This document shows positions 47,607 through 59,313 of a stretch of DNA of 64,000 nt, one piece after another (position 1 is the first letter of the stretch; each line of letters opens with the position of its first letter). The translations under genes and the position numbers were made by a program. The stretch lies in the sequence record NC_048747.1, one strand, 5' to 3'. The notes below the pieces were generated by a model that worked only from the letters and a program-made list of their open reading frames with translations, was not told the DNA's origin and did no database searches.

Positions 47607-50372
47607 ATGTTTAGTGGTTTATTTGGACCTAGTATCGAGGTTGATGATAACCGTGCTATTATTAGCGGGTTATCTTGGCGACCTTTCGAACAGGACATAA
47701 TTAGACTTTACGGAACCACGACCGTAACGAAGTATATGATGAATCGAATTAACTCACGTAAATTCGAAGTCAAGTCATTTTTCCTTTTGGAGCTTAATCA
47801 CCTAATAACTAAACTATTGCAGTTAAAAAGTACCCGGGTGAATCGTCGTGATCTGAAGAAAGTTCAAGAGCTCATTCAAACCGAAACGTGGATACAGGAC
47901 ACCATGGTCCCTAAACCATCTACGTTTGATTACAATAAGTTAAAGCGCACAGTTAAACTAAAACCACTGGACCCTCAACTCCGATTCTTGGAAACGTATA
48001 CTTCCCGCAAAGAATCGTACCACCTAAAGGGTTTGTTATTAGATGGTAAGGCGGGTAGCGGTAAAGCTCAACCACTGAGCGCTAAAATTAAAGTCCCGGG
48101 TGGTTGGTCTACCATGGGTGAAATGTACCGTGGTAAAGTCGTAGAGACACCAGACGGAGGTTACACTACAGTACTAGGTGTCTACCCTCAAGGTCTTACT
48201 GAAGTCGTTGAAGTAGAGCTAGAGGATGGTCGTAAGACTCAGTGTAACCCGGAGCACTTGTGGAAAGTCTACGTCGATGGCGAATGGGTAGTTAAAGAAA
48301 CCCAAGACATCATGGAAGATTACACTGAGAAAAACTATTACATTCCTTTAGTTGACTCCATTATCCCAGAAGAACTTATTCCTAGCTGGTTTAACCAAGG
48401 CATGTCGTTGCGAGTGGGCGCTAAGAACGGTTATGAACGTGACTTGATTCATAAGACCACCAACGACGAACGTTACTCTTGGTTACGTGGTGTCTTAGAG
48501 CCAGGTCAAGCCCATGGTCGCTTTGATGACGAATACCTAGCCAACCTCGTAGTAGAAGTTGCTCGCAGTCTAGGTCACCATGCTAAGTTGTGTCCTGAAG
48601 ACAACGGTTGGTTGGTGGAGACTCATTTAGGGTTTGATCGCATCCGTATTAAACACATCACCCGTAAAGAAGACCAACTGACGCAATGCATCATGGTAGA
48701 AGGTCCAGATCACCTTTACATTACCGATGACTATATCGTTACCCACAATACCGCTTTGTCGTTGATGTGGGCTGAGTCACTCCCTAAAGGTAAGACCGTG
48801 GGGTTTGTTCCCCTTAACGTGATTGATGAAGTGTGGGCTAACCACATGACCAATAACATCAAACACGAAGTCTGGGTTAAACCACCGAAGTTCTGGCACT
48901 CTAAGATGGGACGTCCTCCTCAAAAAGATGACGAGTATTACTTTATCCATTACGAGTTTATGCTGGATCCATTGTGTGACAAATACATGCGAATGATCAA
49001 TCAATTCAATGCTGGTAATCCGGCGTTTAAAATGATCGTCGATGAATGTCACAACTTCAACGACCCTAACTCTAAGCGCACTAAGAAACTTATCGAATAT
49101 AACGAAGTCTATAAGTTCACAGATGCGTTACCAATGTCCGGTACGCCTATTAAAGGGATCGGTAAAGAGTCGTACGCAGTCTTTTGTCTTATCGATGGGT
49201 TCTTTAAGGGTAATGTTCGTAAAGCCTTCCAGGATGGTTATGGGCGTTCTCGTGATAAACTTAACGAGTTGCTGGCTCACCGTATTGGTGCGGAGAAATA
49301 CACCATCGCAGTATTGGACGGTATGGATGATGCGCCTCCAGCGGAACGAGTTAAAGTCAAAGTCCCTAATGCGGAACACTTTACTTTGGATTCTATCCGT
49401 AACCAGATGCAAACTTACATCCAAGACCGCTACAAGTATTACTCCAACAACATGGATAAATACGTTAACTACTTTAACCAAGTCATCTCTGATTACCGAC
49501 ATTACTGTGCGAAACGTAACGACTTACAAGCTTTGTCCGAACTAGATGAATACCTCACTATTGTAAACAAATTCCGTAAAGAAGGTTACAACAACTTTAC
49601 TGATGCGGATTTGTCTAAGCGAGCGAAGGCTATCGAGTTAGACATCGAAGCTTGGATGGCACCAACGGACCGTAAACACTTCCGTAATGCTAAGTCTATC
49701 GTTAAGTATGTTGGGTTGAAGATTCAAGGTGAAGCCCTAGGTAACGTTTTAGGTAAGGCTCGCATCGAAGCGGTTAAAGCTTTAGTAGAGTACGCTGATC
49801 TACCTAAGTACATCGACCATGTAGAAAAGAAAACGTTGATCTTTACTGACCACGTTGACGTAGTCTACGAATGTGACGAACGCTTAAGCCGACAAGGTTA
49901 CGACACCATCTTTGTTTACGGAGAGAACACCAACGACCGAGATCGTCTCGTCAAAGAGTTTGAACAAAAAGACACTAAGAACCCTTTGATCACGACATTC
50001 AAATCTCTATCGACTGGTTATCCGTTACTCATGGCTAACCAAGTGTTGTGTATGAACGCACCTTGGCGTGAGTACATCATGACACAAACTATTGCTCGTG
50101 TGCACCGTCAAGGTCAAACCGCTCCAACCTTCGCCTACATCTTTGAGTTAGACACCAATGGTCGTGAGAACGTCACTGGTCGTAACTTGGATATCATGGA
50201 GTGGAGTAAACAACAAGTAGCACAAATCATGTCAGTACAACACGGTGATGATGTCACTTTAGTTGGTGTCGCTGGTATGGAAGATTTGTTTGATTCTGAT
50301 CGTACGTTGTGGAACGAACCATTATCTATGCCAAAGGTTATCACTTCAGCTAACCCTATGGATTTGTTTTAA
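47607..50372 (+). CDS. SF2 SNF2/DExH-type helicase containing an intein
   Basis: Walker A GKAGSGK|T split by the intein; IVDECH; MSGTP; QTIARVHRQGQ. Confidence 0.88.
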   Translation: MFSGLFGPSIEVDDNRAIISGLSWRPFEQDIIRLYGTTTVTKYMMNRINSRKFEVKSFFLLELNHLITKLLQLKSTRVNRRDLKKVQELIQTETWIQDTMVPKPSTFDYNKLKRTVKLKPLDPQLRFLETYTSRKESYHLKGLLLDGKAGSGKAQPLSAKIKVPGGWSTMGEMYRGKVVETPDGGYTTVLGVYPQGLTEVVEVELEDGRKTQCNPEHLWKVYVDGEWVVKETQDIMEDYTEKNYYIPLVDSIIPEELIPSWFNQGMSLRVGAKNGYERDLIHKTTNDERYSWLRGVLEPGQAHGRFDDEYLANLVVEVARSLGHHAKLCPEDNGWLVETHLGFDRIRIKHITRKEDQLTQCIMVEGPDHLYITDDYIVTHNTALSLMWAESLPKGKTVGFVPLNVIDEVWANHMTNNIKHEVWVKPPKFWHSKMGRPPQKDDEYYFIHYEFMLDPLCDKYMRMINQFNAGNPAFKMIVDECHNFNDPNSKRTKKLIEYNEVYKFTDALPMSGTPIKGIGKESYAVFCLIDGFFKGNVRKAFQDGYGRSRDKLNELLAHRIGAEKYTIAVLDGMDDAPPAERVKVKVPNAEHFTLDSIRNQMQTYIQDRYKYYSNNMDKYVNYFNQVISDYRHYCAKRNDLQALSELDEYLTIVNKFRKEGYNNFTDADLSKRAKAIELDIEAWMAPTDRKHFRNAKSIVKYVGLKIQGEALGNVLGKARIEAVKALVEYADLPKYIDHVEKKTLIFTDHVDVVYECDERLSRQGYDTIFVYGENTNDRDRLVKEFEQKDTKNPLITTFKSLSTGYPLLMANQVLCMNAPWREYIMTQTIARVHRQGQTAPTFAYIFELDTNGRENVTGRNLDIMEWSKQQVAQIMSVQHGDDVTLVGVAGMEDLFDSDRTLWNEPLSMPKVITSANPMDLF
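48066..48749 (+). mobile_element. Class 3 intein (Ala1, 228 aa, residues 154-381) with a decayed LAGLIDADG remnant
   Basis: Starts AQPLSAKI after GSGK; block B NPEHLW, block F TQCIMV, block G IVTHN then extein Thr; W-C-T class 3 signature. Confidence 0.88.
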
Positions 50373-54783: not shown

Positions 54784-57700
54784 TTAGCTCCAAGTTACGG
54801 TGTATTCTTTACGATCGTCTCCGCCAAGGAATGCGTAGGTTACGCTCTTAGCTTCAGCTTCCGTAAACTCAAACACTACCACACCATCTAGGTCCGAAGT
54901 GCGAGCCGGCCAAGTCATGTTACCATCGTACATCACTACTTGCTCTTGATCCATCGGTTGTCCGTTTTGGTCAAGAGTAGTGACGGTGAAGGTTACTGTC
55001 TCGCCTACTGCGACATCTAGATTACCGTGCTGAACGTCGATGCTTGTGTAAACCGGAGTAGGTTCAGACCACGTGATAGTGTGACTGAATCCAGTGACCC
55101 CACCACCTGCGAAGAAGTTGTAGGTGACATCACCTGCTGCATCCGCGCTTAGGTTGTAAGTGAGTGTACCGTCTGGAGCAGATGTGCGTTGAGGGAATGG
55201 AATACCACCATCATCCCAAACTACTGGTTGTAAGCCCATTGGTTCACCGTATTGGTCCAGAGTACGAACCACGACTTCAACTGGAGTACCCACGGTACCT
55301 GTAGTCGAACCAGACACTAGTTCAATAGAACTGTATACTGGCGCTGGTTTAGACCAAGTAATGGTGTGGGATGCACCTGTCACACCACCGCCGCCGTTGA
55401 AGTTGTACGTTACCGCACCTTCGTCGTCAGAGCTGAAGCTAAAGGTCTTCTCACCATTCTCATCGGTGTAAACTACTGGGAATGGAATACCGCCTGTATC
55501 CCAAGTTACAGCCTGGTTACCCATTGGGTTTCCGTCCTGGTCTTTGGTCACGATCTTAACAGGAACCGTCTCTCCGGTTGTACCAGTCGTTTCACCTGAA
55601 ACTACTTCGATGGTACTGTAAACCGCAGGAGGCGCTGCCCAAGTCAATGCGATTGGTAGATCTACACCATCCGCGCTCACGGTTAGGGTTGCGTTAGCAG
55701 CGTCAGCTTCAGTGATGGTGAGCGTCTTACCGTCTTGAGTTGGAGTCGCCGTACCAGTGTAAGTAAAGGTTGGTACCTTACCTACTACATCAACGCCAGA
55801 TGCATTTAGTGTCTCAACATTAACGGTGATGGTTTCACCCGCCACAACATCGTTATCAATTGGAGCCACCTGGTTGATAGTAGTAACCACGTTTGGATCC
55901 ACCCAAGTAACTTGGATGTCTTCAGATAGATCACCAACTTGTACAGTGTAGGTTTTAACACCCGCATCCGCAGAAGTTTGAGCGAAGCTGAATCGACCAT
56001 TGAACAATGTGTCTTGAGATTGAAGTACAGAACCACCTTCTTTAAGATCAACGTTAACACCAACCATGATGTTACCTTTCTGATCTTTAACCAGACCGGC
56101 GAACGTGACGTCTTGATTGATGTCAGAAGTCTTAGGATCTGTGTTGATAGACAGTGTAGTAGGAACCATGATCTCACGAATGATAACAGTGTAAGTACCA
56201 CCTTGTACTGTGCCGTAACGGAAGGTAACTGGTAGGGCTCCCGGAGTGTTGGTTGCGTAAGTGCCTGAGAACGTACCATCTGCTTCAGTAGTCACTGTGG
56301 TCAGTAGTGTGTCGGTACTGCTGTTAAGTACCTCGATTGTCTTACCACTAACGTCACCACCGCCTTCACTGTACAACGTACCTTGGAAACCAAACGGTTC
56401 ATTTTGAAGTACAGATTCATGCAGCATCTTAATGTTAGTGAACTCGTAAGTTACTGCTTTCCAAGTAATAGTTACGTCACGAGTCACATCACCAGCCGTG
56501 ATAGTCATTACTTCAGAACCCACACCTTCATGTGTTGCCGAGAATTCGAAGTGACCTGCATCAACCGCTGTGTTAGTCAACGGAACACCGCCTAATGTAG
56601 CAGTTACAGCCACGTCGATCAACTCACTTTCTTGGTCCAGAATCGTACCTGTGATTACCGCGGACTGTCCTTCAAACACACTTGCGCTATCTGGAAGGTC
56701 CACTACGTTGATCGAAGTAGGAACACGAGGTTCACGAACTGTCAACGTGATAGTTTCTTCAGGTGTCACTACGTCTACCGCATCAGCGATAATAGTAAAG
56801 GTGCCTTGAGCTACAGCCGTACCAGTGTAAGTGAATGAACCATCTGCTGCACACGTTACGTTAACTACCTCGCTTGCATCGTTAGTGATGGCTACACGGG
56901 TGGTTGACCAGTCGTATGGATAGTTGACTGAGATCTCACCAGTGACGGTGTAATTATCACCAATGTCTACCGTGTTAGGTACTACGGTTAGATTTGCAAT
57001 AACCGGGTCACTCTTAACTTCCCATGTCACATTAACCGTTGCAGTGAATGCGCCAGCTTTAACAGTGAGTGTGTGGTTCAGTGAACCGTTATCACGGTAA
57101 TCCGCTACGAAGTCAAATCCTGATTCAGTAGTCACTTGATTCACTGTATGACCATCTGGGTATTCCAGTGTCACGGTTTCACCTACCATGTTCTCCGAGT
57201 ACTGATCTAACAGATTACCGGTGATGTGGAAGGTTTCGTCAGTGAAGAGTGTTTGGGTCGTCGGACTGGTTAGATCGATCGAACTTAACACATGGGTCTT
57301 AGCCCACGTTACCGCGATAGACGCACCGATGTCGTTCTCACCAATAAACGAATACAAGTGTTCAGCTTCGTCGGTCTCAGAAACATCAACACTAAACACA
57401 CCTTGTGCGTTGGATGTGATGTCAGAGACTTTAAGACCGTCTGCTTTAAACACTAGTGGGACATTACCAACTGGGTCATCGATTTGGTCCAGTGTTTTAC
57501 CGGTTAAAGTGATAGTGTCGTCAGTCACACCAGTTGTAGGGTTTTCTGGTTCTAAGAACACTTCATCGAAACGACGCACTAGGTTCCAAGTAAAGTCTAC
57601 CGGAGTTTCCAGTGATTGACATTTCAATGTGATAGATTCAACTACGGTGTTCTCTACGTCAACTGGAGAGTCCAACGTTGCAACGTATTCTTCACCATCG

Positions 57701-59313
57701 ACAGTGTAAGCTTTAGGTGCACCGCCTTCACGGAACCACGTACCGCTCGTTCCCACCATAGGACGATCAACCGTATCGTAAATACGGAAGCGCAACTCAC
57801 CTTCTTTAAACAACTCACCTTCGTCATTAATGATCTCAAAACGACCAGGGACTTGATCAGATGGTTGAACAGTAATAGTGATGACATTACTTTCGTCAGT
57901 ACCAAGTCGCAGCTTAACGGCGTAGGTTACTGGGTCTAGCGTATCGTTCTCCACATCGTAAATGTGTTCCAACACACCTTCTGGTGTAGCGAACAGTTGA
58001 TTCGTGACTTGGTCGTCTACAAGAAACTCAACCGGCACATCCGTAAGCGTTAAACCATCTGAAGAACGTAACGTACTCGTTAGCGTAACTAGTTCGTCAG
58101 CACGGACTTCAGTCTTATCCGCAGACAAAGGACCTAGGATAAGGTCGTCAACAGATAGCGCTGCAAGAATCTGGTGGGTTTCAGAGAAAACGTTCAGATC
58201 TTGAGGAAGACCACAAACAAACTTAATGGTCATGTCACCCGCCACCACTGGAGTGTGTTGGATGTCAAACATGCCGTTTGTGTCGAATTGAACCACGACA
58301 GGTCCTTGACCAACTTCTTCAATAATGATCTTAGGTTCACGGAGTTCATCACCCCAAGGTGTGCGACCAAAGTCACCGACCACATGTCCGGCAATACGGA
58401 AAGGTTGACCTACACGAGTTAAATCCACTGGAGTGGTGACTTCACCGATCGTCCAATGTTCATCGATGTAAGTGACTGAATAAACATCAGTAAGTTTATC
58501 ACGGTCTAAACCAACAGAAACGATCATCTGTAAATCGTCAGTTTGCTGGTTCTTAAGATCTAGGTCTAGGTTGAAAGTGTTATCTTCACCTAACGTACCT
58601 TCAATGATATCACCTTGACGGTAAGTACCCACGAACTCAGCTTTAAAAGCTTTATCGATTTCTGCTGACATCACAGGTTCCGTACCTACACGTTCTACCG
58701 TGATGTACTGTGTTGGAGCGTATGGGTTGGCTGGAAGGATATTACCTTCAACTGAAGAGTCTGTGATATTAATCCCAGTGCCATCCGTCATTGTACCGTC
58801 TGGATTAGGTGTTACGGTCTTAAGTGGTAACGTACCGTCTACGATTGGAGACTGTACCTTTAAGTGACTCAAGCGAACTTCTAGTTCACCTGGGTCAAAT
58901 TCAAAACCTAACAGTTTCTGAATATCCAAGATCGACATGGATTCTTTTACCACCAAATACAGTTCAGCGATATCTTCCACGTAATAAAGACCAGGAATAA
59001 CAATGTTGCGGAACACTTCTAAGTTAGGTACTTTGATGCGTTCTTTCTTACTCAATACTGGAACGGTGTCACCCGGCGACCATTCTTGAACGAATTCAAA
59101 ACCGTCGCGCCCAGTTAACTTGATTTCACCGATGAAGGTACCTGCACCTTCATAACGTTCTTTGATACTTAGAAACTGGACCTCGTCGTCCATCAGACCG
59201 TCGAAGCGGGATTTAGCTAAAGCGATCTCCGCCGGGTCACCTTGGGACTCAGCATAACTGATGCGAATCAGTGCTGTTTTGTCCAACAGGATTTGTCGAA
59301 TATGTTTCATCAT
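54784..59313 (-). CDS. Large Ig-like (Big-1/invasin-type) repeat protein, putative tail fibre or virion appendage
   Basis: About 14 tandem 90-100 aa beta-rich units with DQ.G.P and terminal TW motifs after an N-terminal shared domain; T/V/D/E-rich. Confidence 0.75.
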   Translation of the reverse strand: MMKHIRQILLDKTALIRISYAESQGDPAEIALAKSRFDGLMDDEVQFLSIKERYEGAGTFIGEIKLTGRDGFEFVQEWSPGDTVPVLSKKERIKVPNLEVFRNIVIPGLYYVEDIAELYLVVKESMSILDIQKLLGFEFDPGELEVRLSHLKVQSPIVDGTLPLKTVTPNPDGTMTDGTGINITDSSVEGNILPANPYAPTQYITVERVGTEPVMSAEIDKAFKAEFVGTYRQGDIIEGTLGEDNTFNLDLDLKNQQTDDLQMIVSVGLDRDKLTDVYSVTYIDEHWTIGEVTTPVDLTRVGQPFRIAGHVVGDFGRTPWGDELREPKIIIEEVGQGPVVVQFDTNGMFDIQHTPVVAGDMTIKFVCGLPQDLNVFSETHQILAALSVDDLILGPLSADKTEVRADELVTLTSTLRSSDGLTLTDVPVEFLVDDQVTNQLFATPEGVLEHIYDVENDTLDPVTYAVKLRLGTDESNVITITVQPSDQVPGRFEIINDEGELFKEGELRFRIYDTVDRPMVGTSGTWFREGGAPKAYTVDGEEYVATLDSPVDVENTVVESITLKCQSLETPVDFTWNLVRRFDEVFLEPENPTTGVTDDTITLTGKTLDQIDDPVGNVPLVFKADGLKVSDITSNAQGVFSVDVSETDEAEHLYSFIGENDIGASIAVTWAKTHVLSSIDLTSPTTQTLFTDETFHITGNLLDQYSENMVGETVTLEYPDGHTVNQVTTESGFDFVADYRDNGSLNHTLTVKAGAFTATVNVTWEVKSDPVIANLTVVPNTVDIGDNYTVTGEISVNYPYDWSTTRVAITNDASEVVNVTCAADGSFTYTGTAVAQGTFTIIADAVDVVTPEETITLTVREPRVPTSINVVDLPDSASVFEGQSAVITGTILDQESELIDVAVTATLGGVPLTNTAVDAGHFEFSATHEGVGSEVMTITAGDVTRDVTITWKAVTYEFTNIKMLHESVLQNEPFGFQGTLYSEGGGDVSGKTIEVLNSSTDTLLTTVTTEADGTFSGTYATNTPGALPVTFRYGTVQGGTYTVIIREIMVPTTLSINTDPKTSDINQDVTFAGLVKDQKGNIMVGVNVDLKEGGSVLQSQDTLFNGRFSFAQTSADAGVKTYTVQVGDLSEDIQVTWVDPNVVTTINQVAPIDNDVVAGETITVNVETLNASGVDVVGKVPTFTYTGTATPTQDGKTLTITEADAANATLTVSADGVDLPIALTWAAPPAVYSTIEVVSGETTGTTGETVPVKIVTKDQDGNPMGNQAVTWDTGGIPFPVVYTDENGEKTFSFSSDDEGAVTYNFNGGGGVTGASHTITWSKPAPVYSSIELVSGSTTGTVGTPVEVVVRTLDQYGEPMGLQPVVWDDGGIPFPQRTSAPDGTLTYNLSADAAGDVTYNFFAGGGVTGFSHTITWSEPTPVYTSIDVQHGNLDVAVGETVTFTVTTLDQNGQPMDQEQVVMYDGNMTWPARTSDLDGVVVFEFTEAEAKSVTYAFLGGDDRKEYTVTWS
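54787..55632 (-). repeat. Three tandem 285-nt (95-aa) Ig-like repeats
   Basis: Units start at 55632, 55347 and 55062 (P.VY..I.V..G...GT.G...LDQ.G.PM...GGIPFP...TYNF.GGGGVTG.SHTITWS). Confidence 0.8.

Follow-up and report, generated by a model that had tools for sequence, protein, structure and literature searches.

We identified an unannotated intein in the helicase gene gp096 of the 242-kb jumbo phage Vibrio phage 2 TSL-2019 (Gorgonvirinae, Aphroditevirus), which infects Vibrio alginolyticus; the gene lies within a 64,000-nucleotide stretch of sequence record NC_048747.1 (the window, whose numbering is used throughout). The insert is 228 amino acids (aa) long and runs from Ala1 to Asn228 (48066..48749, on the plus strand, as are all features of the gene described here); it is delimited by its junction sequence, intein-less orthologues, signature residues, and structure matches. 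The features that its sequence allows to be tested place it in the P-loop K|T group of class 3 inteins. We hold with considerable confidence the reading as a whole, that this is a class 3 intein whose endonuclease has decayed and which has been inherited vertically with the helicase.

The helicase precursor open reading frame (ORF) of 921 aa (47607..50372) is identical (100%) to record positions 109607-112369. Its Pfam matches, Helicase_C, SNF2-rel_dom, and ResIII, are confined to the region beyond residue 381, and the PHROG 62 "DNA helicase" profile covers both exteins collinearly, first the N-extein (profile positions 477-639) and then the C-extein (723-1159). The N-extein (153 aa; 47607..48065) ends with the Walker A residues GKAGSGK (48045-48065), and the C-extein (540 aa; 48750..50369) carries motif II, DECH (49041-49052), and the Helicase_C domain (about 49800-50114). 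This domain evidence points to an SF2/SNF2-like helicase and goes no further. The gene is deposited as a single coding sequence, the product of which is named "DarB-like antirestriction" in RefSeq and "hypothetical protein" in GenBank, and orthologues of gp096 are named DNA helicase, RapA-like RNA polymerase-associated protein, or, in phage OBP, virion-associated SNF2 helicase. The database records of gp096 and its related phage helicases hold no intein feature, and a literature search found no report of an intein in these Vibrio phages or in the phage EL helicase.

The boundaries of the intein can be placed precisely. Its first codon, GCT (Ala; 48066-48068), lies directly 3' of the codons for GKAGSGK, and its last codons, CAC AAT (His-Asn), end at 48749 and are followed by ACC (Thr) at 48750, which opens TALSLMW. 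The Walker A motif is split as GSGK|T, between Lys153 and Thr382 of the precursor. The original prediction from the sequence had given this interval and this Lys/Thr split, which were borne out to the base, and the motifs that it quoted (HLW, TQCI, VTHN, RYSWLRGVL, and LANLVVEVARSLG) are all present where it put them. We also made the comparison with intein-less alleles that it had proposed. In Vibrio phages Aphrodite1, 5 TSL-2019, and pTD1 and in Klebsiella phage Miami, GSGKT is uninterrupted, with exactly 228 codons fewer; the intein-less orthologous helicases are 682-694 aa long and read G-S-G-K-T-(A/S/F). Six of 18 related IMG/VR loci have a class 3 intein at GSGK|T, and the other 12 have none. 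In Aphrodite1 the Pfam ResIII match crosses the insertion site (residues 119-277; 32.1 bits versus a cutoff of 22.5), and the insert in gp096 therefore divides motif I (Walker A) of an SF2 ATPase. From 249 retrieved proteins we delimited 293 related inteins, which with the window intein make the set of 294 used below. Hidden Markov models (HMMs) of the N- and C-terminal splicing blocks of this set had the gp096 ORF as their sole match in a six-frame translation of the window (E values of 1.7e-33 and 6.5e-20, respectively).

Class 3 inteins have no N-terminal Cys, Ser, or Thr and carry a triad of Trp (position B:12), Cys (F:4), and Thr (G:5), in which Cys F:4 must act as the first nucleophile (PMC3196547, PMC5222942, PMC5050341); the K|T junction of the P-loop is a "classic" insertion point for phage and bacterial inteins (PMC5050341). 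The block A region of the window intein, AQPLSAKIKVPGG (48066..48104), begins with Ala and hence offers no N-terminal nucleophile. Block B contains His64-Leu65-Trp66 (HLW; 48255..48263), with His at B:10 and Trp at B:12. Block F, LTQCIMVEGPDHLYIT (48678..48725), contains TQCI (48681-48692) with Cys208 (48687-48689) at F:4, which is predicted to act as the initiating nucleophile and as the first branch point. Block G, DDYIVTHN plus Thr+1 (48726..48752), contains VTHN (48738-48749), with Thr226 at G:5, His227 at G:6, and Asn228 at G:7, and the Thr+1 residue (48750-48752) is the Thr of the P-loop itself. His64, Cys208, and Asn228 are conserved in 100% of the 294 inteins and Trp66, Thr226, and His227 in 99%, and all six residues are invariant in an alignment of 39 sequences. 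In the alignment to solved inteins, His64-Leu-Trp66 corresponds to His65-Gln-Trp67 of the Mycobacterium smegmatis DnaB-1 intein (DnaBi1; PDB 6bs8), and the triad of Trp66, Cys208, and Thr226 corresponds to its Trp67, Cys118, and Thr137. Position 1 is Ala in 69% of the relatives and Pro in 10%, followed by Leu, Glu, Asp, Gly, Met, and Phe, while Cys or Ser occurs in only 4%; the residue before the intein is Lys in 83%, and the +1 residue is Thr in 85% and Ser in 15%. A few relatives pair Cys or Ser at residue 1 with an intact Trp-Cys-Thr (WCT) triad and might be able to use either pathway.

Sequence and structure comparisons gave concordant results. The top phmmer matches in the PDB were all intein chains (E values of 5.7e-07 to 4e-03). 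An AlphaFold2 model of the intein, built on 39 relatives, had a mean predicted local distance difference test (pLDDT) score of 94.8. Eighty-five PDB chains matched this model at a Z score of at least 8, and they were mostly inteins and other Hint-fold domains. The best structural matches were 6bs8 (Z score of 20.6; 1.6 Å over 123 residues), 6rix/6riy, and the gp41-1 intein with its WCT-engineered variant. The top sequence and structure matches were thus class 3 inteins (6bs8, 6rix, and 6riy) or engineered gp41-1, but the class 1 gp41-1 and Prp8 inteins were nearly equal in fold, and therefore the class assignment comes from the signature residues and sequence similarity and not from the fold. 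Ala1, the WCT triad, the His-Asn|Thr junction, the alignment to characterized class 3 inteins, and conservation across the family all support the class 3 call made in the original prediction.

In the proposed splicing reaction, the 921-aa protein would be a precursor with its Walker A loop interrupted by the 228-aa intein. Cys208, placed by His64, Trp66, and Thr226, would attack the Lys153-Ala154 bond and take the N-extein onto its thiol, which would give the block F branched intermediate. Thr+1 would then receive the N-extein by transesterification, giving the block G branched intermediate, cyclization of Asn228 would free the intein, and an O-to-N acyl shift would rebuild GSGKT in an active helicase of 693 aa. 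Before splicing, 228 residues separate the Lys from the Thr of GSGKT, and for this reason the precursor would presumably be unable to bind or hydrolyze ATP normally; a P-loop intein is known to disrupt the RadA ATPase (PMC6195587). The exteins are under strong purifying selection, with ratios of nonsynonymous to synonymous divergence (dN/dS) of 0.01-0.09 among the intein-bearing phages, and therefore the helicase must be made, which needs splicing. With this selection and the continuous ResIII domain of the intein-less orthologue, the earlier proposal that helicase activity depends on splicing is sound. Splicing via Cys208, like the loss of mobility discussed below, appears well supported.

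Some points weigh against this reading. Splicing, the Cys208 branch, and the inactivity of the nuclease are all deduced from sequence. A WCT triad grafted onto gp41-1 was insufficient for splicing (PMC7664689), so the signature is necessary but not sufficient evidence. The Pfam model Intein_splicing (PF14890) scored 15.2 bits, below its gathering threshold of 35.8, and an NCBIfam search of the intein returned nothing. The gp41-1 result and the low Pfam score would also fit an intein that is dead, with the 921-aa protein working unspliced or not at all, or one in which Thr+1 attacks the N-terminal junction directly in the manner of class 2, and the class 3-like intein of Arthrobacter Arth_1007 is indeed nonfunctional (PMC3196547). 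However, Arth_1007 has no Cys F:4, which the window intein has. All catalytic positions here are intact and strongly constrained, and a P-loop split by 228 residues stands in an otherwise conserved helicase with the low extein dN/dS given above. Class 2 inteins begin with Ala, lack the WCT triad, use the +1 residue to attack the N-terminal junction directly, and are known to date from KlbA genes alone (PMC3196547), whereas the best sequence and structure matches of the window intein are class 3. We consider a dead intein or a class 2-like route to be highly improbable. Membership in class 2 itself (the KlbA type) was ruled out by the WCT triad and by the host, which is a helicase and not KlbA.

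The window intein is larger than a splicing domain alone. Mini-inteins of the family align to its residues 1 to ~97 and ~190 to 228, and therefore the extra material corresponds to residues ~98-190 (~93 aa; 48357..48635). Profile comparison by hhalign, superposition on PI-SceI, and predicted secondary structure identify this region as the decayed remnant of a LAGLIDADG homing endonuclease, derived from its second half. In the model it consists of a helix at residues 106-116, a helix at 133-143 that holds the block E remnant ERYSWLRGVLEPGQ, a strand at 150-153, a helix at 156-168 (LANLVVEVARSLG; 48537-48575), and a hairpin at 172-187. When a profile of eight orthologous alleles was compared by hhalign with the endonuclease inserts of 146 full-length relatives, residues 70-192 aligned with a probability of 96.5% (E value of 9e-10) and residues 98-190 alone with a probability of 94.4% (E value of 8.7e-08), in both cases to the block D-E-H region. 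In these alignments ERYSWLRGVLEPGQ falls on qRl.LLqGLmDTDG, the second LAGLIDADG motif (block E), and EYLANLVVEVARSLGHHAKL falls on LA.dv..LVrSLGG.a.i, the helix after block E. The block E remnant as a feature, RYSWLRGVLEPGQ (48471..48509, with RYSWLRGVL at 48471-48497), aligns with ..LLqGLmDTDG of the full-length relatives, and its Tyr, Ser, Trp, Arg, Gly, and Leu are invariant in seven orthologues. The position of the catalytic Asp of block E is Gly in the window intein, in which the DTDG site reads EPGQ; the seven orthologues differ from one another at this site, and none of them has the family's D-x-D-G. Shewanella phage FishSpeaker has at the same site a 355-aa intein with LLGDGS and LLDTDGT, and Pfam LAGLIDADG_3 matches it over exactly the aligned stretch. 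The model of the whole window intein superposes with PI-SceI over 223 of 228 residues at 2.8 Å and with PI-PfuI over 222, and it can therefore be regarded as a subset of a full endonuclease-bearing intein.

Some results on the remnant count against this identification. Modeled alone, the middle region gave a weak structure (pLDDT of 61.5), and none of its Foldseek matches had a significant E value (best, 0.07), although the first of them were LAGLIDADG proteins, PI-SceI, WhiA, and I-DmoI, over ~70 residues (one half-domain). Pfam searches of the intein gave no LAGLIDADG match at an E value of ≤1, and an HMM of the 146 full-length endonuclease inserts had no match in the 64-kb window, the remnant included. 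Since this profile-sequence HMM misses the remnant, its identity comes from the profile-profile and structure comparisons. The endonuclease insert between the splicing lobes of full-length family members is ~250 aa long versus ~93 aa here, and roughly 125 to 135 residues of the enzyme, including the DNA-binding sheets, are gone. The fate of the first LAGLIDADG motif (block C) is less clear: MAFFT places the helix at 106-116 (IPSWFNQGMSL) and IPSWFNQGMSLRVG on block C, but hhalign places IPSWFNQGMSLRVG on the helix that precedes block D, and a sub-profile test of the block C assignment was not significant. No acidic residue is present in QGMSLRVG, the candidate for the first motif, and we lean toward block C having been deleted. 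The original prediction had recognized LAGLIDADG remnants in the two middle motifs that it quoted; the decayed endonuclease holds up by profile-profile and fold comparison, whereas the two motifs prove to be block E and the next helix, and the first LAGLIDADG motif is not demonstrably retained. An active LAGLIDADG endonuclease has two such motifs, or one per subunit of a homodimer, each with a catalytic Asp or Glu at its end; the single recognizable motif, the loss of the catalytic acid, the ~93-aa size, and the lack of a Pfam match all set the insert apart from such an enzyme. The nuclease is probably inactive: the insert would be what is left of a LAGLIDADG endonuclease, about half gone and with its catalytic Asp replaced, and would not home autonomously.

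The same 227- to 228-aa architecture is found in seven alleles, those of the window phage, PDCC-1, phiKT1019, phiKT1028, and VP4B and the metagenomic alleles P0005 and P0006, and identity to the window intein ranges from 92% down to 50%. The five isolate alleles align with only a 1-aa insertion or deletion. The seven inteins form one clade (99/99), in which the grouping of the window phage and PDCC-1 with phiKT1019 agrees with the extein tree and the remaining forks have no resolution. In the extein tree the intein-less pTD1 is sister to VP4B (98/100), and the intein-less Aphrodite1 and 5 TSL-2019 fall inside a supported clade (96/99) with the window phage, PDCC-1, and phiKT1019. The basal alleles, P0005 and P0006, both carry the decayed intein, and therefore the simplest history is a single ancestral intein that was already decayed, followed by two precise losses. 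This would mean that the intein was already passed on vertically with the helicase gene when Aphroditevirus and Tidunavirus had yet to split, and that two lineages later lost it precisely. The similarity of the remnant is detectable only within the orthologous helicase allele group, which indicates that the decay is specific to this lineage. We rejected the idea that the 228-aa architecture is a reduced, mobile lineage shared with other host proteins whose inteins are of similar length, as the middle region matches only orthologous helicase alleles; the apparent "100% coverage" of other matches in a word-indexed search is weak alignment through this region. In the phiKT1019 sequence (L004, 1501-4260), the deposited coding sequence starts at 1630 (876 aa), but both the open frame and the homology extend upstream to 1501 (919 aa), and the annotated start is probably too far downstream.

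The scattered distribution also admits the reading that the intein is still mobile, through an endonuclease supplied in trans or through recombination during coinfection, and that presence and absence reflect gains and not losses. Presence and absence are interleaved in both genera (VP4B with the intein and its sister pTD1 without; the window phage and PDCC-1 with it and Aphrodite1 without), and between VP4B and phiKT1028 the inteins are slightly closer (86-91% aa identity) than the exteins (85-86%). Homing appears active elsewhere, since Miami-like Klebsiella genomes have or lack a 362-aa full-length intein on nearly identical exteins. Yet the resolved intein groupings fit the extein tree, and the inteins diverge in step with the exteins; the basal P0005 and P0006 share the decayed form, for which parsimony gives ancestral presence and two losses; the family-insert HMM found no endonuclease relative elsewhere in the 64-kb window; and the catalytic Asp is missing. 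Together these make continued mobility improbable in our view, and the earlier proposal that the element is probably no longer mobile draws support from both the endonuclease decay and the allele phylogeny. A decayed, vertically inherited intein is also consistent with base composition: GC content is 46% in the intein and 40-43.5% in the gene and window, close as expected for an old resident.

Klebsiella phage Miami (L011, 301-2349) has no intein, but the metagenomic P0036, with nearly identical exteins (branch lengths of 0 and 0.015), has a full-length LAGLIDADG class 3 intein of 362 aa at the same site. This pair looks like a very recent gain or loss, and homing at the K|T site is probably still active in Miami-like phages. 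This single K|T site thus displays every stage, from invasion through decay to loss.

We compared rates of change along the gene between the window phage and PDCC-1, the closest pair, in which the remnant has changed 3-6 times faster than the helicase. The dN was 0.003 in the N-extein, 0.025 in the C-extein, 0.013 in the N-terminal splicing lobe, 0.012 in the C-terminal splicing lobe, and 0.076 in the middle region, with dS of about 0.3-1.6; in the middle region, 20% of nucleotides versus 12% of residues differed. Splicing-lobe dN/dS was 0.01-0.2. Saturation of dS in most pairs makes these and the extein dN/dS values rough, which tells against leaning on them heavily, and we used the closest pairs and dN ratios. 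The pattern nevertheless clearly indicates that the remnant is relaxed relative to the rest of the gene yet under purifying selection and not neutral.

This constraint raises the question of whether the remnant has been kept for a function, either stabilizing or tuning the folding of the splicing domain or serving as a regulatory or binding module that sets when the helicase becomes active, by conditional splicing in response to redox state, zinc, or an infection-stage cue. Seven alleles retain the architecture although their intein identity falls as low as 50%, the middle dN above compares with a dS of about 1.6 for that region, the blocks NQGMxLRVG and E.YSWxRGxL are invariant in alleles that span both Gorgonvirinae genera, and the remnant is predicted to be well ordered in the full model (pLDDT of 83-97). 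Purifying selection, however, is what the foldability of an in-frame insert in a needed protein predicts by itself. The middle dN is 3 to 25 times the extein dN between the window phage and PDCC-1, though not between VP4B and phiKT1028. Relatives range continuously from 140 to 410 aa and include working mini-inteins without the domain, and the whole intein was lost in two lineages with no visible cost. We therefore think a retained function unlikely, although it is the alternative to which we give the most weight.

The original prediction had also suggested that splicing could be redox- or condition-gated. Class 3 P-loop inteins provide precedents for conditional splicing (PMC6195587, PMC7360933). 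In M. smegmatis DnaBi1, the noncatalytic Cys48 forms a disulfide bond with the catalytic Cys118 (PMC6195587), but the Cys48 position aligns to Val in the window intein. Of its two other cysteines, Cys60 (B:6) is the one nearest to the active site, and 56% of relatives have Cys at this position; Cys176 belongs to the remnant and is variable among orthologues. The zinc ligands of DnaBi1 are the Cys118 thiol and the Tyr128 hydroxyl (PMC7360933), and these correspond to Cys208 and Tyr218, the latter 97% conserved; zinc inhibition is therefore plausible as a generic class 3 property, and zinc sensitivity of the window intein is plausible by analogy. Gating by redox state or another condition is conjecture and a low-probability possibility. 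A more specific version, in which the half-endonuclease remnant has been co-opted as a conditional switch that keeps the injected or early helicase inactive until a cue (redox state, zinc, or entry into the phage nucleus), seems to us quite improbable. If it were true, a homing endonuclease would here have given rise to a new regulatory domain. We prefer the simpler reading of a vertically inherited class 3 intein with a decayed remnant.

The intein adds a new, unannotated member to a family that is well known and very large, and it will not surprise a specialist. A word-indexed search for related proteins returned 275, and an exhaustive profile-free search gave 7,451 cluster representatives at an E value of ≤1e-3 and 3,110 at ≤1e-10. 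The hosts of related inteins are diverse P-loop nucleoside triphosphatases, including SNF2/ResIII helicases, DnaB, RecA, PhoH, ClpB-like AAA+ proteins, and others. Sizes range from mini-inteins of 140-160 aa to a main mode of 340-370 aa with Pfam LAGLIDADG_3 or Hom_end matches, with a continuous tail between them. Many metagenomic P-loop proteins (ClpB-like AAA+, PhoH-like, and SNF2-like) carry two or three family inteins per polypeptide (P0007, P0008, P0009-P0014, and P0121-P0139), and P0008 has three class 3 inteins.

In sequence and structure, the nearest known systems are the mycobacterial DnaB-1 inteins, M. smegmatis DnaBi1 (6bs8/6own) and Mycobacterium chimaera DnaB1 (6rix/6riy), which are class 3, lie in a helicase P-loop, and have a non-nucleophilic residue 1. 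They were the best or near-best sequence matches in the PDB, and 6riy matched the model with a Z score of 19.9 at 2.0 Å. They share with the window intein His B:10, Trp B:12, Cys F:4, Thr G:5, the terminal His-Asn, and the zinc-ligand Cys and Tyr. They are mini-inteins (139-145 aa) whose linker is disordered, and their host is the bacterial replicative DnaB (a RecA-fold hexameric helicase), whereas the window intein has 228 aa, an ordered endonuclease remnant, and a phage SF2/SNF2-like host. At +1, DnaBi1 has Ser where the window intein has Thr. The founding class 3 inteins, Deinococcus radiodurans Snf2 and mycobacteriophage Bethlehem DnaB, which we compared by description only, are alike in signature and helicase hosts, one of them Snf2-type. 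Their branched intermediate on the block F Cys has reportedly been demonstrated biochemically. A phage origin has been proposed for class 3 inteins (PMC3196547, PMC5222942). The Bethlehem intein has a full LAGLIDADG endonuclease (PMC5050341), unlike the decayed one of the window intein.

In context, the nearest systems are the full-length K|T inteins of orthologous jumbo-phage helicases, those of FishSpeaker, Aeromonas phage CF8 (358 aa), and the metagenomic P0036 and P0058 (353 aa). These share the host family, insertion point, and splicing blocks with the window intein, and the remnant aligns to their block D-E-H region. They keep both motifs (LLGDG and LLDTDG) and match Pfam LAGLIDADG_3, whereas the window intein is ~125-135 aa shorter and without the catalytic acid. 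We also found an unannotated 262-aa class 3 intein (AMPL...VTHN|TFTS) at the same helicase site in ORF166 of Pseudomonas phage EL (L007, 1495-4317), and EL-like metagenomic alleles of 268-271 aa at this Walker A site; HHBS47_1 (L010) and IMG/VR loci L019-L021 also have EL-type helicases with such an intein. The EL-type intein has a middle region unlike that of the window intein and branches outside the Vibrio-phage intein clade, which marks a separate decay lineage.

Elsewhere in the window, gp104 (about 54784-59310, minus strand; record 116784-121310) is a coding sequence of ~1,500 aa with the RefSeq name [quoted passage not shown] which is odd for a phage gene.

For annotation, these results mean that the mature gp096 helicase would have 693 aa and not 921 aa, and that phage EL ORF166 and several other jumbo-phage helicases are likewise affected. 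Alone, the intein matches PHROG 50 "DnaC-like helicase loader," PHROG 19299 "terminase large subunit," and PHROG 510 "DNA primase"; intein sequence inside PHROG profiles can mislead the transfer of function to intein-bearing proteins. The case leaves the understanding of the class 3 mechanism unchanged. It does supply a compact, naturally occurring class 3 intein that has Thr at +1, comes from a mesophilic marine phage, and is usable for splicing studies. It also supplies a dated and internally controlled series for the intein life cycle in virulent jumbo phages, made up of seven alleles in the decayed state, two precise losses, and the full-length relatives inserted at this site.

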